DNA from: Hyaloraphidium curvatum SAG 235-1
Taxonomy: Eukaryota; Fungi; Monoblepharomycota
Assembly: GCA_025558095.1 (NCBI GenBank)
Contig: JAIVFI010000013.1
Coordinates: forward strand, 434,001-498,000
Direction: 5' to 3'
DNA length: 64,000 nucleotides
Part shown: positions 46,880 to 54,512 of the stretch, piece after piece
Position numbering within the stretch: the first letter of the stretch is position 1
Layout: every line of letters starts with the position of its first letter
Position numbers and translations under genes: made by a program
Notes under the pieces: model-generated
The model's input: the letters and a program-made list of their open reading frames with translations, nothing else
The model's database searches: none
What the model was told of the DNA's origin: nothing

Positions 46880-48669
46880 CTAAGCAACGTCGCGATCCGA
46901 CTCCTTGGCGACCGCTTGCACGGCAGCGTCCGTCGGTGCAGCTCCAGCCTTGACTTCCACAGCCTCTTCTCGATCTGCGGGGCCATCGCTGGCCTTTGGC
47001 GCCCACAGCTCGTACCGAGTTCTCCACTGGTAACCACGTAGCCCAAGATAGCCCACCGCCACCCCGCAACATGCAACCAAGGCGGCCCACATCGTCAACC
47101 ACCAGGCGTGCATCGCCTCTGTGGCCTGGATGACGACGATGGGAGCGACTGCAGCCACTAAGTAGCGCCCGAGGTTGTACAAACTGATGATAGACGCAGA
47201 GTCCTTGGGGAAAATGTCAACAAGGAACGTTTGCAGAGGCGTGAGAACGATAAATTGGTTGAATCCGATGAGTGCTCCAGCAATGCAGATTACGTAGATG
47301 GGCAGGGCCTTGTACAGACCCCAGGCCATGAGCGTGATCCCCACGGGGAAGCCGACAAAGCCAGGCAACGTGACACGTAATCGCCATTCAGGAATACCGG
47401 GTCCTCCCTGCTTACGCGACTGCCGGATAGCCCAGTCGGCCAAGAAGCCCGCGACGATGTTGCCCGGAATGTTGGCGATCGTGTGCGGCAGGTACAAGAG
47501 TCCGACTTGCGCAGAGGTGATGCCCGGGTACGCCTGCTGAAGTTCCCTGCTGTAGTTGCTTATGTAACTGAACACCGAAAACATTAGCAGGACTGCTACA
47601 AGCACTGCTATTGAAACGAAGCTGTATTTGAGGTAGGTGATCGCCCGGAAGGGGTTCGGCCGCTGGCGCTTTGCCTTAGCTCCAGGAGTCAAATCCAGGG
47701 TCTCCGGAAGGAAGAAGGCGATGCAGAGGGTGACAATGAGACCGCAAGCTGTGAAGGGTAGACGTTTAGCACCACGTTGCGTCCTTTGGCAGCAAACCAC
47801 CGACCTGCGAGCAAGGCAAACGTCCAGCGCCAAGTGGCGTACTCCGCAAGCAAACCACCAATCGGCGGAGCAATTGCAGGTCCGGCCAAGGGGCCTAGGT
47901 AAAAGGCGGAGAACGCACGGGCTCGCTCTCCGATCAAGAACACATCCGAGATTGTGCCCGCGCCGACCGAGAGCACGGAAGAGCCTCCCAATCCTTGAAG
48001 CACGCGACAGAACAGCAGAACGCCAATGTTCGGGCTCAATCCACAGCCGACGCAGCCCGCAATGAAGACTGTCAAAGAGATGAGGTACACCGGCCGCCGG
48101 CCCCAGGTGTCCGCCAGCGTACCCCATCCCAAGGGGCCGATCGCGAGCGCAAGCAAGTACAGGGTCAGACTCAGATTCACCTTGGGGTGCATAAGAGATC
48201 ATGAGAACTGCGACTCGTGCATAACGGCTCCACTGACCAGCATGGCAGACGTGTCCAGATCGGTTTGGATATCGAGAAGCATGGGCAAGTAAATGCCGGT
48301 CCCAAGAGGGACGAGGAATGCTCCGAAGGCCACGATGGCAAGGATCAGGCCCTTCCGGGCCTTGGAGAAGTCCTGCTTGCCGTTTGGCGGCACCTTGGCG
48401 CCGTAGAGAAAGAGATTGATCATCGTCCGCGACGTGGAATGCTCCCCGGGCGGAGGCTCCTCGCTTCGCGACGTCCAGTCCTCTCCCGGTGGAGATTCCG
48501 CGATTTGAGACGTCAAATTCTTCCCGGGCGGAGGCTCCGCGATGGAAGTGTGCTCCGGTGCGCCGAAGTCCGCGGGTTCCGGGAGCGGTTCCTGTTCCAA
48601 CGGTTCGAGCGTCCGCGACTCCGAGTGCTCCGGTTCCTGCTCCGCGACATCTCCCGAACTCGCTGCCAT
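46880..48669 (-). CDS. MFS drug:H+ antiporter (DHA1; Qdr/Aqr/Dtr1-like)
   Basis: IYLPML..I..DL. Motif A GTLADTWGRRPVY, RVLQGLGGSSVLSVGAGTISDVF...ERARA, PEWRL, QTFLVDIFP. Confidence 0.9.
48440..48555 (-). repeat. Three degenerate 39-bp (13-aa) tandem repeats in the MFS N-terminal tail
   Basis: TSIAEPPPGKNL / TSQIAESPPGEDW / TSRSEEPPPGEHS. Confidence 0.75.
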
Positions 48670-48883
48670 TGCGCTCGCAGCTTCTGAGCGATCACGATCA
48701 GGCACGTTGGGAGAGTGGGGGCGGCCAAATGTCCAGCCGTGCCGGGACTCGGGAGGCACCGCCCGATCACTACCCACCCATCGATCCCGGCCTAGCTGGT
48801 GGTCGGCCGCGCTCGAGACGATGATGTTCCAGTGGCAGATGCGGTGTCATGTTCTCTTTCCTTACTCATAATATTAGACAGAG

Positions 48884-49810
48884 CTATCTGAAGGCGATGC
48901 CCTTCGCGTCCTCGACAATCTCCGTCCCTCTCCTTCCCTCGAGGATCGCCTCGAGATCAGCAAGCCCGCCGATCAGCGCACGTTTCCCGGCGGCACGGGC
49001 AAACTCGCATGCTGCCTCAATCTTGGGACCCATCGAGCCGGCAGGAAAGTCGATGGCCTCCAGATCCGCCGGGCTCGCGCGCGATATCGATCGCTGCCCA
49101 GGCTTCCCGTAGTCCATGTACACGCTGTCCACGTCGGTCAGCATCACGAGGGCGTCGGCATCCAGCTGACGAGCAAGCAGCGACGAGGCAAGGTCCTTGT
49201 CCACCACGGCCTCGATTCCATCTAGCCTCGGTCCTCTCATCACTGTCGGGATACCACCCCCGCCGGCACAGATCACGATCGTGCCGCGCTCCAAGAGCCA
49301 CCGAATCGGTCGGTCCTCGATGATCTTGAGCGGTTTGGGACTCGCCACGACCCGGCGCCAGAGCTTCCCGTCCAGCTTGAAGGTCCACCCGAGCTCTGCA
49401 GCCAGCCGGTCGGCATCCTCTTTGGCGTATTGCGGTCCGATGAATTTGGTTGGGTTTGAGAACGCGGGATCGGCTCCGTCAACCTCGACCATTGTCAGGA
49501 GGGTCGCCAGGGGCTGCTCCTCGGGCAAGACATTGCCGAGCTCTTGTTCGAGGATATACCCCACCATCCCCTCAGTTTCCGCGTCGAGCACGTCCAAGGG
49601 CCACGCTTTGTCCGGCTGCTTGGGATTCTGGAGCGCGAGCAGGCCTACTTGGGGCCCGTTTCCGTGCGAAATGACAAGCTGGTGCCGCATCGCGACCGCG
49701 GCCAATGCCTTTGCCGCGGCGCGAACGTTGATCCTCTGGGCCACCGCCGTCATCGGCTCGCCGCGTCGGAGGAGCGCATTTCCGCCTAAGGCCACCACCA
49801 GACGTTGCAT
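48884..49810 (-). CDS. arcC: Carbamate kinase, intronless, prokaryote-type
   Basis: [67 protein letters not shown]; 308 aa. Confidence 0.97.
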
Positions 49811-50043
49811 TTCGGTCTTAGAGAGCTACCCGGGTAGGGCACACTCCCAAAGGACCGGTGGAATGAGCACGGTTTGTTGAATGAGCAGCTTTGTAATGAG
49901 CGCAGTTTGGTGCAGCCCGCCAAAGGACCCGGACTCGAAAGAGGCACCAAGTCCTCGTCGATGCCTGTGATTCGCGCGCGCCGGGTGGCGGAGCAAGACT
50001 GACTCACAACGAACCACAAACTCCGGTTCACATTTGCGCACCG
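49811..50043. promoter_or_regulatory. Shared bidirectional promoter of the arcC / arcE-like pair
   Basis: 233 bp between divergent ATGs. Three AATGAGC(N3-4)TTTG direct repeats (49862-49909) and TGACTCA at 50000-50006. Confidence 0.55.
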
Positions 50044-51614
50044 ATGGCCCGAGAAATCAACCCGGAAGCGAAGCAGGAGCGCGTCCTCATCTTGGGCGCT
50101 GCCGGTGAGGCACGATTCGCTGCCGGTTCGAGCTCCGGATCGCTGACATGTCGACCTTCGCCGGACCGCTCCTCTGCGCCGCACTTGGGACAGGCCGCGA
50201 CTTCCACAACTTCCAATGCCTTTACCGCGAAGGCAGCCGCGACAACGCCGTGGTCGTCGGCTTCACCGCGGCCCAGATACCCCATATCGACGCCCGGCGC
50301 TACCCGGCCTCGCTCGCCGGACCTCTTTACCCCGATGGCCTCCCCATCTGGCCTGAAGCGGACCTCGAAAAAGTCATCAAAGACCAGAAAGTCACCCGCT
50401 GCATGCTGGCGTACAGCGACCTCTCGGACGGGGACGTGATGAAGATCGCCGCACGCTGCCTTGCCGCCGGCGCCGAGTTCTTCCTCGTGCCGCCGGACAG
50501 GACCATGCTCCCGGCCAGGAAGCCCGTCGTCGCCACCTGTGCAGTCCGCACCGGGTGCGGCAAGTCGCAGGTGTCGAGATACGTCATCGAGGCGCTGAAG
50601 AAGCACGGCAAGAGCTGCGTGCTCGTGCGGCATCCGATGCCGTGCGTTTCTCGGCTCAAACCTCCACGCCAAGTGCCTGATCACCGACCGCCCTTCGCAG
50701 ATACGGCGACCTGGCCAAGCAGGCCGTCCAGCGCTTCGAGACCTTCGACGACCTGGACAAGCACGGCGTGACGATCGAGGAGCGGGAGGAGTACGAGCAG
50801 CACATCAAGGCCGGCACCATCGTCTACGCTGGAGTCGACTACCACGCTATTCTTGAGGCCGCGCAGTCGGAGCCGACCGCGGACGTGGTCATCTTTGATG
50901 GCGGCAACAACGACACCCCCTTCTTCAAGCCAGACCTTTGGATCTGCGTCGCCGACCCGCACCGCGCCGGTCACGAGCTCTCCTACTACCCGGGCTCGCT
51001 CAACTTCGCCATGGCGGACGCCATAGTCATCAACAAGGCGAACACGGCCGATCCGGACAAGGTCGAGGCCGTGAAGAAGGCCGCGGCCAAGTACAACCCC
51101 AAGGCCCGGGTGTACGTGACCAACTCGGAGCTCGAGGCCGACGATCCCTCCGCCATCAAGGGCAAGAAGGTCCTGGTGGTGGGTGGTCTTCCGACCGCGA
51201 CATCCGCAGCAAGACATCGCTCATCGCACGCATCCGCCGCAGGTGGACGACGGCCCGACCCTCACGCACGGCGGCATGCCCTACGGCGCCGGCCGCTTCG
51301 CTGCGGAAAAGTTCGGCGCGGCCGAGGTCGCCGACCCCCGGCCCTACTTCGTCGGCTCCATCAATGAGACCTTTGCCAAATACCCGCACCTCGGCAAGCT
51401 CGTCCCCGCCATGGGTTACTGGCCCGAGCAGATCCGAGACCTGGAGGAGACCATCAACGCCGTGCCCTGCGACTCGGTGGTCATCGCCACGCCGATGGAC
51501 CTGCGGAGGGTCGTCAGGATCGACAAGCCCGCGGCCGTGGTGACTTACGCGGTGCGCGACCGCGAGGCGCCGTTCCTGAGCGAGGCGGTCGATGCGATGG
51601 TCGCCAAGCAGTGA
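50044..51614 (+). CDS. arcE: COG2403 / cyclic 2,3-diphosphoglycerate synthetase-like P-loop protein; probable arginine synthetase (ArcE family)
   Basis: Spliced (introns 50105-50193, 50642-50700, 51179-51242): RVLILGAAGRDFHNF...GFTAAQIPHID.R.YP..LAGPLYPDGLPIW.E...AVRTGCGKSQVS...RHPMPYGDL..Q.VQRF...TIEEREEYEQHI...DGGNND.PF...VINK...DGPTLTHGGM...PAMGY...ATPMDL. Confidence 0.82.
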
Positions 51615-51911: not shown

Positions 51912-52157
51912 ATGGCCTCCGCACCCGCGCCCTGCACCCCCAACGCCTGGTTCGACGCCGTCCCCCGGCACGACCCCTCGGCCATCGGCACCAAGGTGCC
52001 CGCCCCCGCGCCGGCGCAGAAGGCGCCCGCACCCGCCGACGCCAAGGACGCGCAGCGCCAGGCGGGGGGCCAGCCGGCGCTGCTTTCGCCCGAGAGCGCG
52101 AGCAAGACGTGCCGCTGGTTCGCGGTGCACGTCGCCGGGCCGAAGGCCAAGCTTTGA
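51912..52157 (+). CDS. Small 81-aa protein ending in AKL (possible PTS1)
   Basis: ATG in GCCATGG context, strong GC3 bias like neighbouring genes, C-terminal -PKAKL*. Confidence 0.5.
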   Translation: MASAPAPCTPNAWFDAVPRHDPSAIGTKVPAPAPAQKAPAPADAKDAQRQAGGQPALLSPESASKTCRWFAVHVAGPKAKL

Positions 52158-52845
52158 ACGCCGGCCTTGACCGGGTCTCCTTTGTGGAGCATGGACTCCT
52201 TGAACGCTGCGCGAACGATGCGCGTGGGTGCCTCGAAGGCGGCAGGCCGCGTGCTCCCTGGTTGGCGTGGGCAACGCTGCGCGACGAGCGGGCTGGAAGC
52301 CTCCAAGCCTCTTTGAACTATCGTCCTGATTCGCGAAGTTGTCTGCTGGCGGTTATCTCGTGGTGTATGTCTCTGACTGGTCATGGAATGTGAAACTGTG
52401 CACAAATGACTGTTCCGTTGAAGACTGCAAAGGTCTGTCCGCGATCGAGACCGATGCCGAGGTGACGTCCAAACACCATAGATGGGTTCGGGCTAACGCT
52501 GCGCAGCGTTGCATCCGCCATGGTGTCGGATGTCGGGGTGCCGGGTGTGCACGCTGCCCACGTGAAGGCCTGCAGGGTACGCACGCATCCGAGGCAGTTC
52601 CAGCGACGGTCCACCGGCGGATCCTGGGGCCCTCCAGCTTCATCTCCAATACCTGTGCTTGCTTCGCAGGGGCTCCGTCCCCTTGCGTTGTGCCTCCGTG
52701 TGTTTGCCCTTCGCCAGCGTCGGCTGAATCGTCGGCAGCAATCCGGTGACTCCTCCCCAGCAAAACACAGGGCATTGCGCCCTCTCCCCGGCTCCTCCTA
52801 CTTTCCCTGGCCACGCGCGCGCCGCTGGCGGCGGCCCCCCTCGTC

Positions 52846-54512
52846 ATGCGCCTCCGCACCGCCGCGCGGGGCTTCGCGACGATCCCGCTGCCGTCGCTCC
52901 TTGCCCGGCTCACCGGGCGGGCGCCCTCGACGGCGCAGGCGACGGCCGACGGGCCCGCTGGCGGCGAGAAGCTGCCCTCGGCGGATCCGCGCGCGTGGGG
53001 CGACAGGCTGTCGGCGCTCGTCGCGCGGGGCGAGGTGCGGGCGCCGCGGGGCGCGGTGGTCCTCTGCCACGGTGCGTTCCTCACGGGGGCTGGAGCCGGT
53101 GGATTTGGGCTATTTAAGGCGAATGCCGGTTCGGGGCGGACCCGGGGGGCCCGCGGGACGGAATGCGGGCCGGGGAAAGACCGGGATCGGGTGGGACCGG
53201 GGGGGTCGGGTGCCGCGGCGGGGCGGTCAGGCGGCACGTGAAGGCGCAAAACAGACGGAGAGGATGCTATTTGTGCCGGTGGAAGGCTGAAGGCGGCTCC
53301 GGGAGGGCCTGGCTGCCTCCACCGCCCCGACATTTCGGGCAGCGGCTGACCCCCCCGCCCGCCGCCCTCCAGGCCTCTTTGGCTTCGACAAGCGGGTGAT
53401 CCTGCCCTTCCTGGTGGACCACTACTGGTCCGACATTTCGCTGGCGCTCGAGCGGATCGGCTGCAAGGTCCTGGTGGCCCGGGTGCCCTCGACGGGCGAC
53501 GTCCGCGCGCGGGCCTGGGCGCTGCGCCGCGTGGTGGAGCAGGTCGACGGGCCGGTGAACCTGCTCGCGCACTCGATGGTGGGTTGCGATCACGGGGATA
53601 CGGATCGACGGCTGACGTGGCCGGCAGGGCGGGCTCGACGCCCGGTACCTCCTCTCGCACCTCCCCCCCACCGCCAACCCGGTGCTCTCCCTGACCACCA
53701 TCTCGACGCCGCACCGCGGCTCCCCCTTCATGGACTACCTCCGCGACGTCCTCGGCGTCGGCTTCCGCTACGACGACCCGCACCTCCGCGAGGAGCTGCA
53801 CCGGCGCGCGGCCCGCGTGGGCGGCGAATCCGACCGCGCGGGACGGACGCGGCAGCTCGCGCGGTCGTTCGAGGCGCTCGAGGGCACCGCCGGCGACGGC
53901 GATCACCCTTCGAGGGCCGAGGCGTCCCCGCTCCGTGCCGCGCTCGAGAGCGCGGCCGAGGCATCCCGCGAGCACCGCGCCGCGGGCGTGGATGCCGCGG
54001 ATGCCGAGGCCGACGCGCTGCTCCCTCCCCCCCCTGACCCTTCCGCCCCCTTTCCTTCGATACCCCGGCGCAACGAGTCCGCCCTGCGGCACCTCTTCGC
54101 ACCCCTGGACCGGCCGGCGTACCACGCCCTTACGACCGATTTCTGCACGCGCGTGTTCAACCCCCTCACCCCCGACCGCCCGGGAACGGCGTACTTTTCG
54201 TACGGCGCGCGCGCGGACGAGCCGCCGCGGGGCAACCTCCTCCGCTTCTCGTGGGGCGTCGTGCGCCGCCGCGAGGGGGACAACGACGGCCTGGTGAGCC
54301 TCGGCAGCGCGCGGTGGGGCGAATACCTGGGGACGGTGGATGCGGACCACTGGGTGGGTACGGCGCGTCGGGGCTGTGCAGGCGCCGACTCACCGCGTCC
54401 GGATCGGCAGGATCTGAACGGGCGGTGGCGGGTCAAGCCCGGGGGGAAGCGGTTCGATGCGCCGGGGTTCTGGGTCGGCGTGGCGACGCGGCTGTGGGAG
54501 AGGGGATTCTAG
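52846..54512 (+). CDS. TGL2: Triacylglycerol lipase (Tgl2-like alpha/beta hydrolase)
   Basis: VVLCHG-LFGFD...YW, NLLAHSMGGLDARYL, LTTISTPHRGS, NDGLVS..SARWGEYLG...DH.DL. Confidence 0.88.

Follow-up and report, generated by a model that had tools for sequence, protein, structure and literature searches.

The closest described relative of the system reported here is the pathway of Thermococcus kodakarensis formed by the arginine synthetase ArcE (TK2200), the ornithine carbamoyltransferase (OTC) ArcB and the carbamate kinase (CK) ArcC (Michimori et al., PNAS 2024; PMC11032458). The biochemistry of ArcE has been published (PMC11032458, PMC13260591). Homologues of TK2200 were formerly annotated as predicted GTPases, the Desulfurococcales are listed as an arcE-bearing order, and arcE homologues are stated to occur in "a few eukaryotes" (PMC11032458). 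In a survey of the arginine deiminase (ADI) pathway across eukaryotes, ADI was not detected in Fungi, and the taxa listed in its text as CK-bearing include no fungus by name (Novak et al. 2016, PMC5052871). Here we describe a CK gene and an ArcE-like gene that lie head to head in a stretch of 64,000 nucleotides (the window; contig JAIVFI010000013.1, positions 434,001 to 498,000 of the forward strand) from the genome of Hyaloraphidium curvatum SAG 235-1. Fungi are taken to degrade arginine through arginase. The gene pair suggests that H. curvatum, an early-diverging fungus (Monoblepharomycota), may gain ATP directly from arginine. The reading that we favour, with a probability of about 55%, is that the two genes form a divergent, prokaryote-derived pair of chimeric ancestry which acts catabolically, and in which the ATP from CK would depend on access to OTC.

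Identity of the carbamate kinase

The first gene of the pair, at 48884-49810 on the minus strand, encodes a protein of 308 amino acids and has neither an intron nor an N-terminal extension. The protein scored 459.5 bits against NCBIfam NF009008 (cut-off 361) and 376.1 bits against TIGR00746 arcC (cut-off 358.25), and the Pfam domain AA_kinase spans its residues 3-280. It aligns end to end with the solved carbamate kinase 8crv (E = 4e-122, residues 2-308), and also matches 1e19, 1b7b and 3kzf. The closest matches were bacterial, at 63-70% identity, and all three of the bacterial kinases that were sampled are encoded in arcA-arcB-arcC operons. With both curated cut-offs passed and the fold matched over the full length, the open reading frame (ORF) is unambiguously predicted to encode a catabolic-type carbamate kinase (EC 2.7.2.2), as a preliminary description of this stretch had proposed.

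The ArcE-like gene and its family

The second gene (50044-51614, plus strand) is separated from the first by a shared intergenic region at 49811-50043. The distance of 233 bp between the two ATGs is the one given in the preliminary description. According to the gene model, which was derived from the sequence, four exons add up to 1359 nt, or 452 codons and a stop codon. Exon 1 (50044-50104) consists of MAREINPEAKQERVLILGAA and the first base of a Gly codon. Exon 2 (50194-50641) carries the N-terminal domain and the P-loop with RTGCGKS and RHPM, exon 3 (50701-51178) the P-loop NTPase core with the motifs YGDL, TIEEREEYE, DGGNND and NK, and exon 4 (51243-51614, stop codon included) the DDGPTLTHGGM motif and the C-terminal domain. 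The three intervening introns, at 50105-50193 (89 nt, phase 1), 50642-50700 (59 nt) and 51179-51242 (64 nt), all have GT..AG borders. In searches, alignments and trees, exons 2, 3 and 4 were used separately, as separate rows, and not as one spliced protein.

A search of 1.84 billion proteins with exon 3 returned 923 representative clusters, and the best full-length prokaryotic matches were 50-57% identical. Exon 3 was 44-63% identical to the homologues in a set of 80 named species genomes (including 37 archaea and 39 bacteria, with archaeal loci from genera other than Thermococcus and Pyrococcus), and 47-50% identical to the homologues of Desulfurococcales; over all archaeal and bacterial homologues compared, its identity was 44-66%. 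In single ORFs of bacteria or archaea, the counterparts of exons 2, 3 and 4 follow one another in the fungal order, at 39-66% identity, and exon 2 by itself spans this same range. An alignment of 117 references has 82 columns with a conservation of at least 95%. The exon pieces extend over 80 of them and agree with the consensus in 78, the two departures being W to F and E to D. The two columns that are not covered correspond to codons split at exon junctions, which read G and P once spliced. The near-invariant residues of the family include those of the motifs GAAGRDFH, RTGxGKS, RHPMPY, TIEEREEYE, DGGNND and EDGPTxTHGG, and the four motifs on which the preliminary description had relied were found again: GAAG|RDFHNF (across the junction of exons 1 and 2), AVRTGCGKS (exon 2), TIEEREEYE (exon 3) and DGPTLTHGGM (exon 4). 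With homology over the full length and 78 of the 80 near-invariant residues retained, the second gene is, by sequence, a full-length member of the ArcE/COG2403 family, as had been suggested; this placement was made through archaeal and bacterial homologues rather than through TK2200 itself.

Scans of the ArcE-like exons gave no match to any NCBIfam model or specific Pfam model, apart from a weak cobW-domain match in exon 3. The homologues carry the label "predicted GTPase" in the JGI annotation. A homology search seeded with the bacterial protein P0124 stayed within its Bacteroidota/Ignavibacteria neighbourhood, and the fungal protein and its close relatives were not among the proteins returned. 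In another homologue, P0256 (806 amino acids), the sequence is split by an intein that carries a LAGLIDADG homing-endonuclease domain (Pfam Intein_splicing and LAGLIDADG_3).

The preliminary description had also considered that the protein might be a bona fide cyclic 2,3-diphosphoglycerate synthetase (CpgS). Exon 3 matched the solved CpgS 9sxb with E = 2e-7 over residues 59-158 only, and 8oru and 8ork with E = 0.59. The family profile reached E = 1.5e-16 and 1.2e-10 against solved CpgS, again in the P-loop core only, and exon 2, which encodes the N-terminal domain, gave no match to solved CpgS at E <= 1. The CpgS identity was therefore rejected, the similarity being confined to the P-loop core and absent from the N-terminal domain. 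NCBI records name several bacterial proteins of the ArcE family (P0291, P0337, P0375 and P0400) "cyclic 2,3-diphosphoglycerate synthase". Given that these proteins share no more than a remote resemblance with solved CpgS, and this in the P-loop core only, the label looks like a systematic misannotation by an over-extended name.

Transcription and the shared promoter region

The RNA evidence consists of transcript contigs of run X1, the one public run that carries the locus. An unspliced contig of 1099 nt (record 2) covers the CK gene at 48845-49943 on the minus strand with 0 differences, leaving a 5' untranslated region (UTR) of about 133 nt and a 3' UTR of 39 nt, where the contig ends approximate the transcript ends. 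The contig of the ArcE-like gene begins at 50021 and skips 89, 59 and 64 nt at GT..AG borders, exactly as modelled. Both genes are thus transcribed and the three introns are real, which settles the concern, raised in the preliminary description, that the genes might not be expressed.

The contig of the ArcE-like gene, with a length of 2840 nt, extends to about 53,070, passing through a small ORF (51912-52157) and overlapping the 3' portion of a long ORF on the minus strand (52353-54350), which has no Pfam match. This extension could be a long 3' UTR, or the assembler could have merged convergent overlapping transcripts.

As only about 77 bp separate the RNA contigs of the two genes (ends at 49943 and 50021), the intergenic region appears to act as a compact bidirectional promoter. 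On the side of the CK 5' UTR, three copies of the motif AATGAGCR lie within 41 bp (49862-49902) at spacings of 18 and 15 bp; in the whole window, 9 copies were observed versus 3.8 expected. A TGACTCA motif of the Gcn4/AP-1 type, of which there are only three in the window, is located at 50000-50006, and the ArcE RNA contig begins about 15 bp downstream of it.

Conservation of the pair and gene neighbourhoods of ArcE homologues

A second head-to-head pair of CK and ArcE genes, with 159 bp between the ATGs, was found on L018, a metagenome scaffold from a eukaryote. Identity to the fungal proteins is 58% for the L018 CK and 62-72% for the L018 ArcE. Beside the pair, this scaffold has genes for a protein kinase and for a TLDc domain protein, and beyond the pair no synteny between L018 and the window was detected. 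Intron 1 is located at the same codon and in the same phase in both ArcE genes, the positions of intron 2 differ by 1 nt, and those of intron 3 do not correspond; the assumption that all three introns are common to L018 was accordingly rejected on inspection, only intron 1 being exact. When the L018 intergenic region was searched for AATGAGCR and TGACTCA, neither motif was found. At least two eukaryotes have retained the two genes as a divergent pair.

In prokaryotes, the genes within 7 kb of the ArcE homologue were recorded. Among the 80 named genomes, CK was present in 21 and OTC in 12, with either of the two in 22, and ADI was found in none (0/80). Among the 80 closest metagenome loci, CK was nearby in 13 and OTC in 5. 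On one contig only, CK and ArcE are fused into a single ORF of 766 amino acids (protein P0223, L191:134-2434). The contig is 2.8 kb long with a GC content of 65% and looks planctomycete-like, the adjoining gene being of planctomycete type (CxxCH motif). In a metagenome-assembled genome of Candidatus Micrarchaeota (L114:6075-8242), CK and ArcE are arranged head to head as in the fungus; the prokaryotic clusters are mostly on the same strand.

The homologue of the prasinophyte Pseudoscourfieldia marina (CP150388.1, L101:10001-14193) is located two genes, or 1.1 kb, from argininosuccinate synthase, and no CK was found within 10 kb of it. This homologue has 581 amino acids, with a long N-terminal extension.

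Ancestry of the two genes

In the ArcE tree, all three exon pieces take the same place. They cluster with the proteins of L018, L021 (probably eukaryotic), L102 (apparently eukaryotic), the metagenome fragment P0122, and Pycnococcus and Pseudoscourfieldia (UFBoot 96, SH-aLRT 92). The sister group of this eukaryotic clade is formed by the ArcE proteins of Methanotrichaceae/Methanosarcinales (94/89), and these sisters are all linked to CK.

The CK tree gives a different picture. Here the fungal and L018 kinases group with bacterial PRK12354-type kinases of arcABC operons, and a split with 100* support separates them from every ArcE-linked prokaryotic CK. Because the two trees disagree, the pair is chimeric: by these phylogenies, both genes are prokaryote-derived and come from different lineages. 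The CK tree rules out that the two genes were transferred together out of a single arcE-arcC operon. We infer that the pair was assembled either in the eukaryotic lineage or in an unsampled donor.

Genomic context and the remaining arginine metabolism

The preliminary description had placed the pair among ordinary genes of a fungus. In agreement with this, it is flanked by genes for a PKA regulatory subunit, CBP80, Npa1, a TPT transporter and a BZZ1-like protein, and the 759,491-bp contig holds both CK and the PKA regulatory subunit amid eukaryotic genes. The ORF of the PKA regulatory subunit shares 98% identity with an NCBI protein from H. curvatum that is encoded on this contig. The base composition of the pair is host-like. 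The GC content at third codon positions (GC3) is 0.76 for CK and 0.86-0.93 for the ArcE exons; host genes nearby have equal or lower values, which argues against a recent, un-ameliorated transfer. Both CK and the ArcE-like gene are single-copy in the genome. Directly downstream of CK and on the same strand is an MFS_1 transporter gene (46880-48715), the 5' part of which is covered by an RNA contig (48300-48715). No transporter gene lies beside the pair in L018, and we found no evidence that the MFS_1 gene belongs to the module.

The genome contains exactly two carbamoyltransferase loci, one for aspartate carbamoyltransferase and one for OTC (G000:C34, ~407,000-408,134). All three enzymes of the pathway are thus encoded, ArcE and CK in the window and OTC elsewhere. 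In the OTC ORF, 57 residues precede the OTCace_N domain (7 Arg, 1 Lys, 1 Asp and 0 Glu), and this arginine-rich stretch resembles a mitochondrial presequence. In CK and ArcE, on the other hand, the conserved core begins directly at the N-terminus, and the transcripts are too short upstream to encode a presequence. With a single, presequence-like OTC and with no extension on CK or ArcE, there is a compartment problem for a three-enzyme pathway yielding 2 ATP. The expectation that OTC would be supplied in trans was correct in that the gene is encoded elsewhere in the genome; the only copy looks mitochondrial, and the search for a second, cytosolic OTC, as advised in the preliminary description, led back to this single locus.

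ArgG and ArgH are also encoded. A bypass of these two enzymes had been suggested earlier, yet with ArgG, ArgH and arginase all present the gene content shows no need for it. No convincing ADI was found in the genome, where the only matches were weak ones of 28-37 bits to the ADI superfamily. These are located at G000:C20:557028-557749 and G000:C18:477841-478104, and one of them also touches the eukaryotic DDAH model; the two loci are probably DDAH-like or amidinotransferase-like rather than arginine deiminases.

Proposed function and alternative explanations

As we picture the catabolic route, ArcE, here assumed to be cytosolic, would convert arginine to citrulline with the formation of a first ATP, and, after cleavage of citrulline by OTC, CK would use the resulting carbamoyl phosphate to form a second ATP. 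This second step would require that the only OTC of the genome is accessible in the same compartment. If OTC is inaccessible, only the first ATP-yielding step would be secure, and the complete 2-ATP pathway is uncertain. As for the direction, the presence of ArgG and ArgH makes a catabolic role of ArcE the most likely one, following the argument of the ArcE authors (PMC11032458).

Several points weigh against this proposal. About 70-75% of the prokaryotic homologues have neither CK nor OTC nearby. A cytosolic CK would not meet carbamoyl phosphate made in the mitochondria. As the genome encodes an arginase, ArcE is not the sole route of arginine breakdown. A single RNA assembly is the sole source on expression, and its depth is no gauge of expression level or co-regulation. 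Finally, the only characterised ArcE that we know of is that of one hyperthermophilic archaeon, and to our knowledge no bacterial or eukaryotic member of the family has been assayed.

In a broader form, the proposal would be that of a eukaryotic cytosolic arginine synthetase pathway, present in the fungus and in a few scattered eukaryotes, in which an archaeal-type ArcE and a CK of the bacterial ADI-operon type are served by one bidirectional promoter. We put this version forward only tentatively, and the odds are somewhat against it.

The enzymes could also work in the reverse or a cyclic direction, with ArcE producing arginine from citrulline, NH3 and ATP, and CK producing carbamoyl phosphate from carbamate and ATP. 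Together with OTC and arginase, this would amount to an aspartate-independent assimilation of ammonia or to an alternative urea cycle. Fungi with a mitochondrial OTC normally export citrulline to the cytosol, which is the apparent site of ArcE. The position of the prasinophyte homologue near a biosynthetic argininosuccinate synthase also fits this direction, as does the TGACTCA in the shared promoter, which is the type of motif used in fungal general amino-acid control (a motif match only). In addition, the ArcE reaction is reversible, and T. kodakarensis grows on citrulline through ArcE (PMC11032458). We nevertheless regard this direction as unlikely, since ArgG and ArgH are both present and the ArcE authors argue for a catabolic role in such organisms, since the fungal CK clusters in its tree with kinases that belong to catabolic arcABC operons, and since the published ArcE Ks for ammonia is millimolar.

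We give no better chance to the two enzymes being uncoupled, with ArcE alone yielding one ATP and citrulline, which is then recycled or exported, and CK having a separate cytosolic role, e.g., in the disposal or salvage of carbamoyl phosphate or carbamate. The single OTC locus with its presequence-like extension, compared with CK and ArcE that have none, would be in line with such a separation, and so would the different prokaryotic ancestries of CK and ArcE. However, L018 keeps the divergent pair without any flanking synteny, and both linkage and fusion to CK recur in prokaryotes, which argues for functional coupling. Furthermore, OTC might be dually targeted.

Still less probable is that the COG2403 protein acts on another guanidino or ureido compound, or catalyses another phosphoryl transfer, so that "arginine synthetase" would be a misnomer for the eukaryotic clade. 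It is true that only one enzyme of the family has been characterised, that most homologues have no arc genes nearby and that the eukaryotic clade is a distinct branch; against this stand the retention of 78 of the 80 near-invariant residues, the CK linkage of all of the nearest prokaryotic sisters (Methanotrichaceae), and the arginine-related neighbours beside eukaryotic homologues.

An artefact, be it bacterial contamination, mis-assembly or dead relics of gene transfer, has a negligible probability: the CK gene is intronless and most similar to bacterial sequences (63-70% identity), but the three spliceosomal introns of the ArcE gene are removed in RNA, both genes lie within a 759-kb contig amid eukaryotic genes, GC3 is high and the base composition host-like, and the reading frames are intact with the conserved residues retained. 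Bacterial contamination in particular is ruled out by the splicing of the ArcE-like RNA together with the eukaryotic flanking genes.

Novelty and significance

The novelty of the locus had been overstated in the preliminary description, as arcE homologues in "a few eukaryotes" are already reported in PMC11032458. That mention had not been followed up. In our protein and cluster searches, no other named fungal ArcE homologue turned up, and a literature search on Hyaloraphidium and horizontal gene transfer listed no title or abstract that dealt with this pair. What is new, then, is the fungal ArcE homologue itself, the divergent CK-ArcE unit, which is both expressed and conserved, the chimeric origin of this unit and the question of the OTC compartment.

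If the catabolic reading of the pair is true, Fungi would gain substrate-level phosphorylation from arginine; if the enzymes run in reverse, the result would be an aspartate-independent, ammonia-driven arginine/urea cycle. An active pathway would in this way provide fungal nitrogen metabolism with a new route for gaining energy or handling ammonia. The pair is an example of how genes from two different prokaryotic sources come to form one unit. A culturable early-diverging fungus also offers a mesophilic eukaryotic setting for the chemistry of ArcE and its physiological direction, and the mismatch with the OTC compartment is in itself a clear and testable question.

Comparison with known systems

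The fungal system resembles the T. kodakarensis pathway in the apparently identical protein family of ArcE, in its association with CK, in the presence of OTC and in the lack of a convincing ADI in the genome. In contrast to the archaeal genes, the fungal ArcE gene is nuclear and intron-bearing, and belongs to a divergent two-gene unit rather than an operon. The ancestries of fungal ArcE and CK differ, OTC is unlinked and probably mitochondrial, and ArgG, ArgH and arginase coexist with the pair. Enzyme activity has been measured in T. kodakarensis, whereas the fungal pair is known from genes and transcripts.

The arcE-arcC(-arcB) clusters of prokaryotes, which occur in Methanothrix/Methanosaeta, Acidobacteriaceae, Aminicenantes and Ignavibacteria (L137, L156, L117, L143, L146 and L124), share with the fungus the adjacency of ArcE and CK, and the ArcE of Methanotrichaceae forms the sister group of the eukaryotic clade. 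Unlike the fungal pair, these clusters are mostly same-strand operons, and their CKs lie across the split with 100* support. The relation to CpgS (PDB 9sxb, 8oru and 8ork) is more distant. A P-loop NTPase core is distantly related in both, while the N-terminal domain has no detectable similarity and the identity is far below that to ArcE-family proteins.

With the classical ADI pathway of bacteria and anaerobic protists (arcA-arcB-arcC), the fungal system shares its CK, which is nearest to the kinases of arcABC operons (63-70% identity), and the overall logic by which arginine is converted to citrulline and then to carbamoyl phosphate and ATP. The difference lies in the first enzyme, which is the hydrolytic ADI in the classical pathway and, as predicted here, the ATP-forming ArcE in the fungus.

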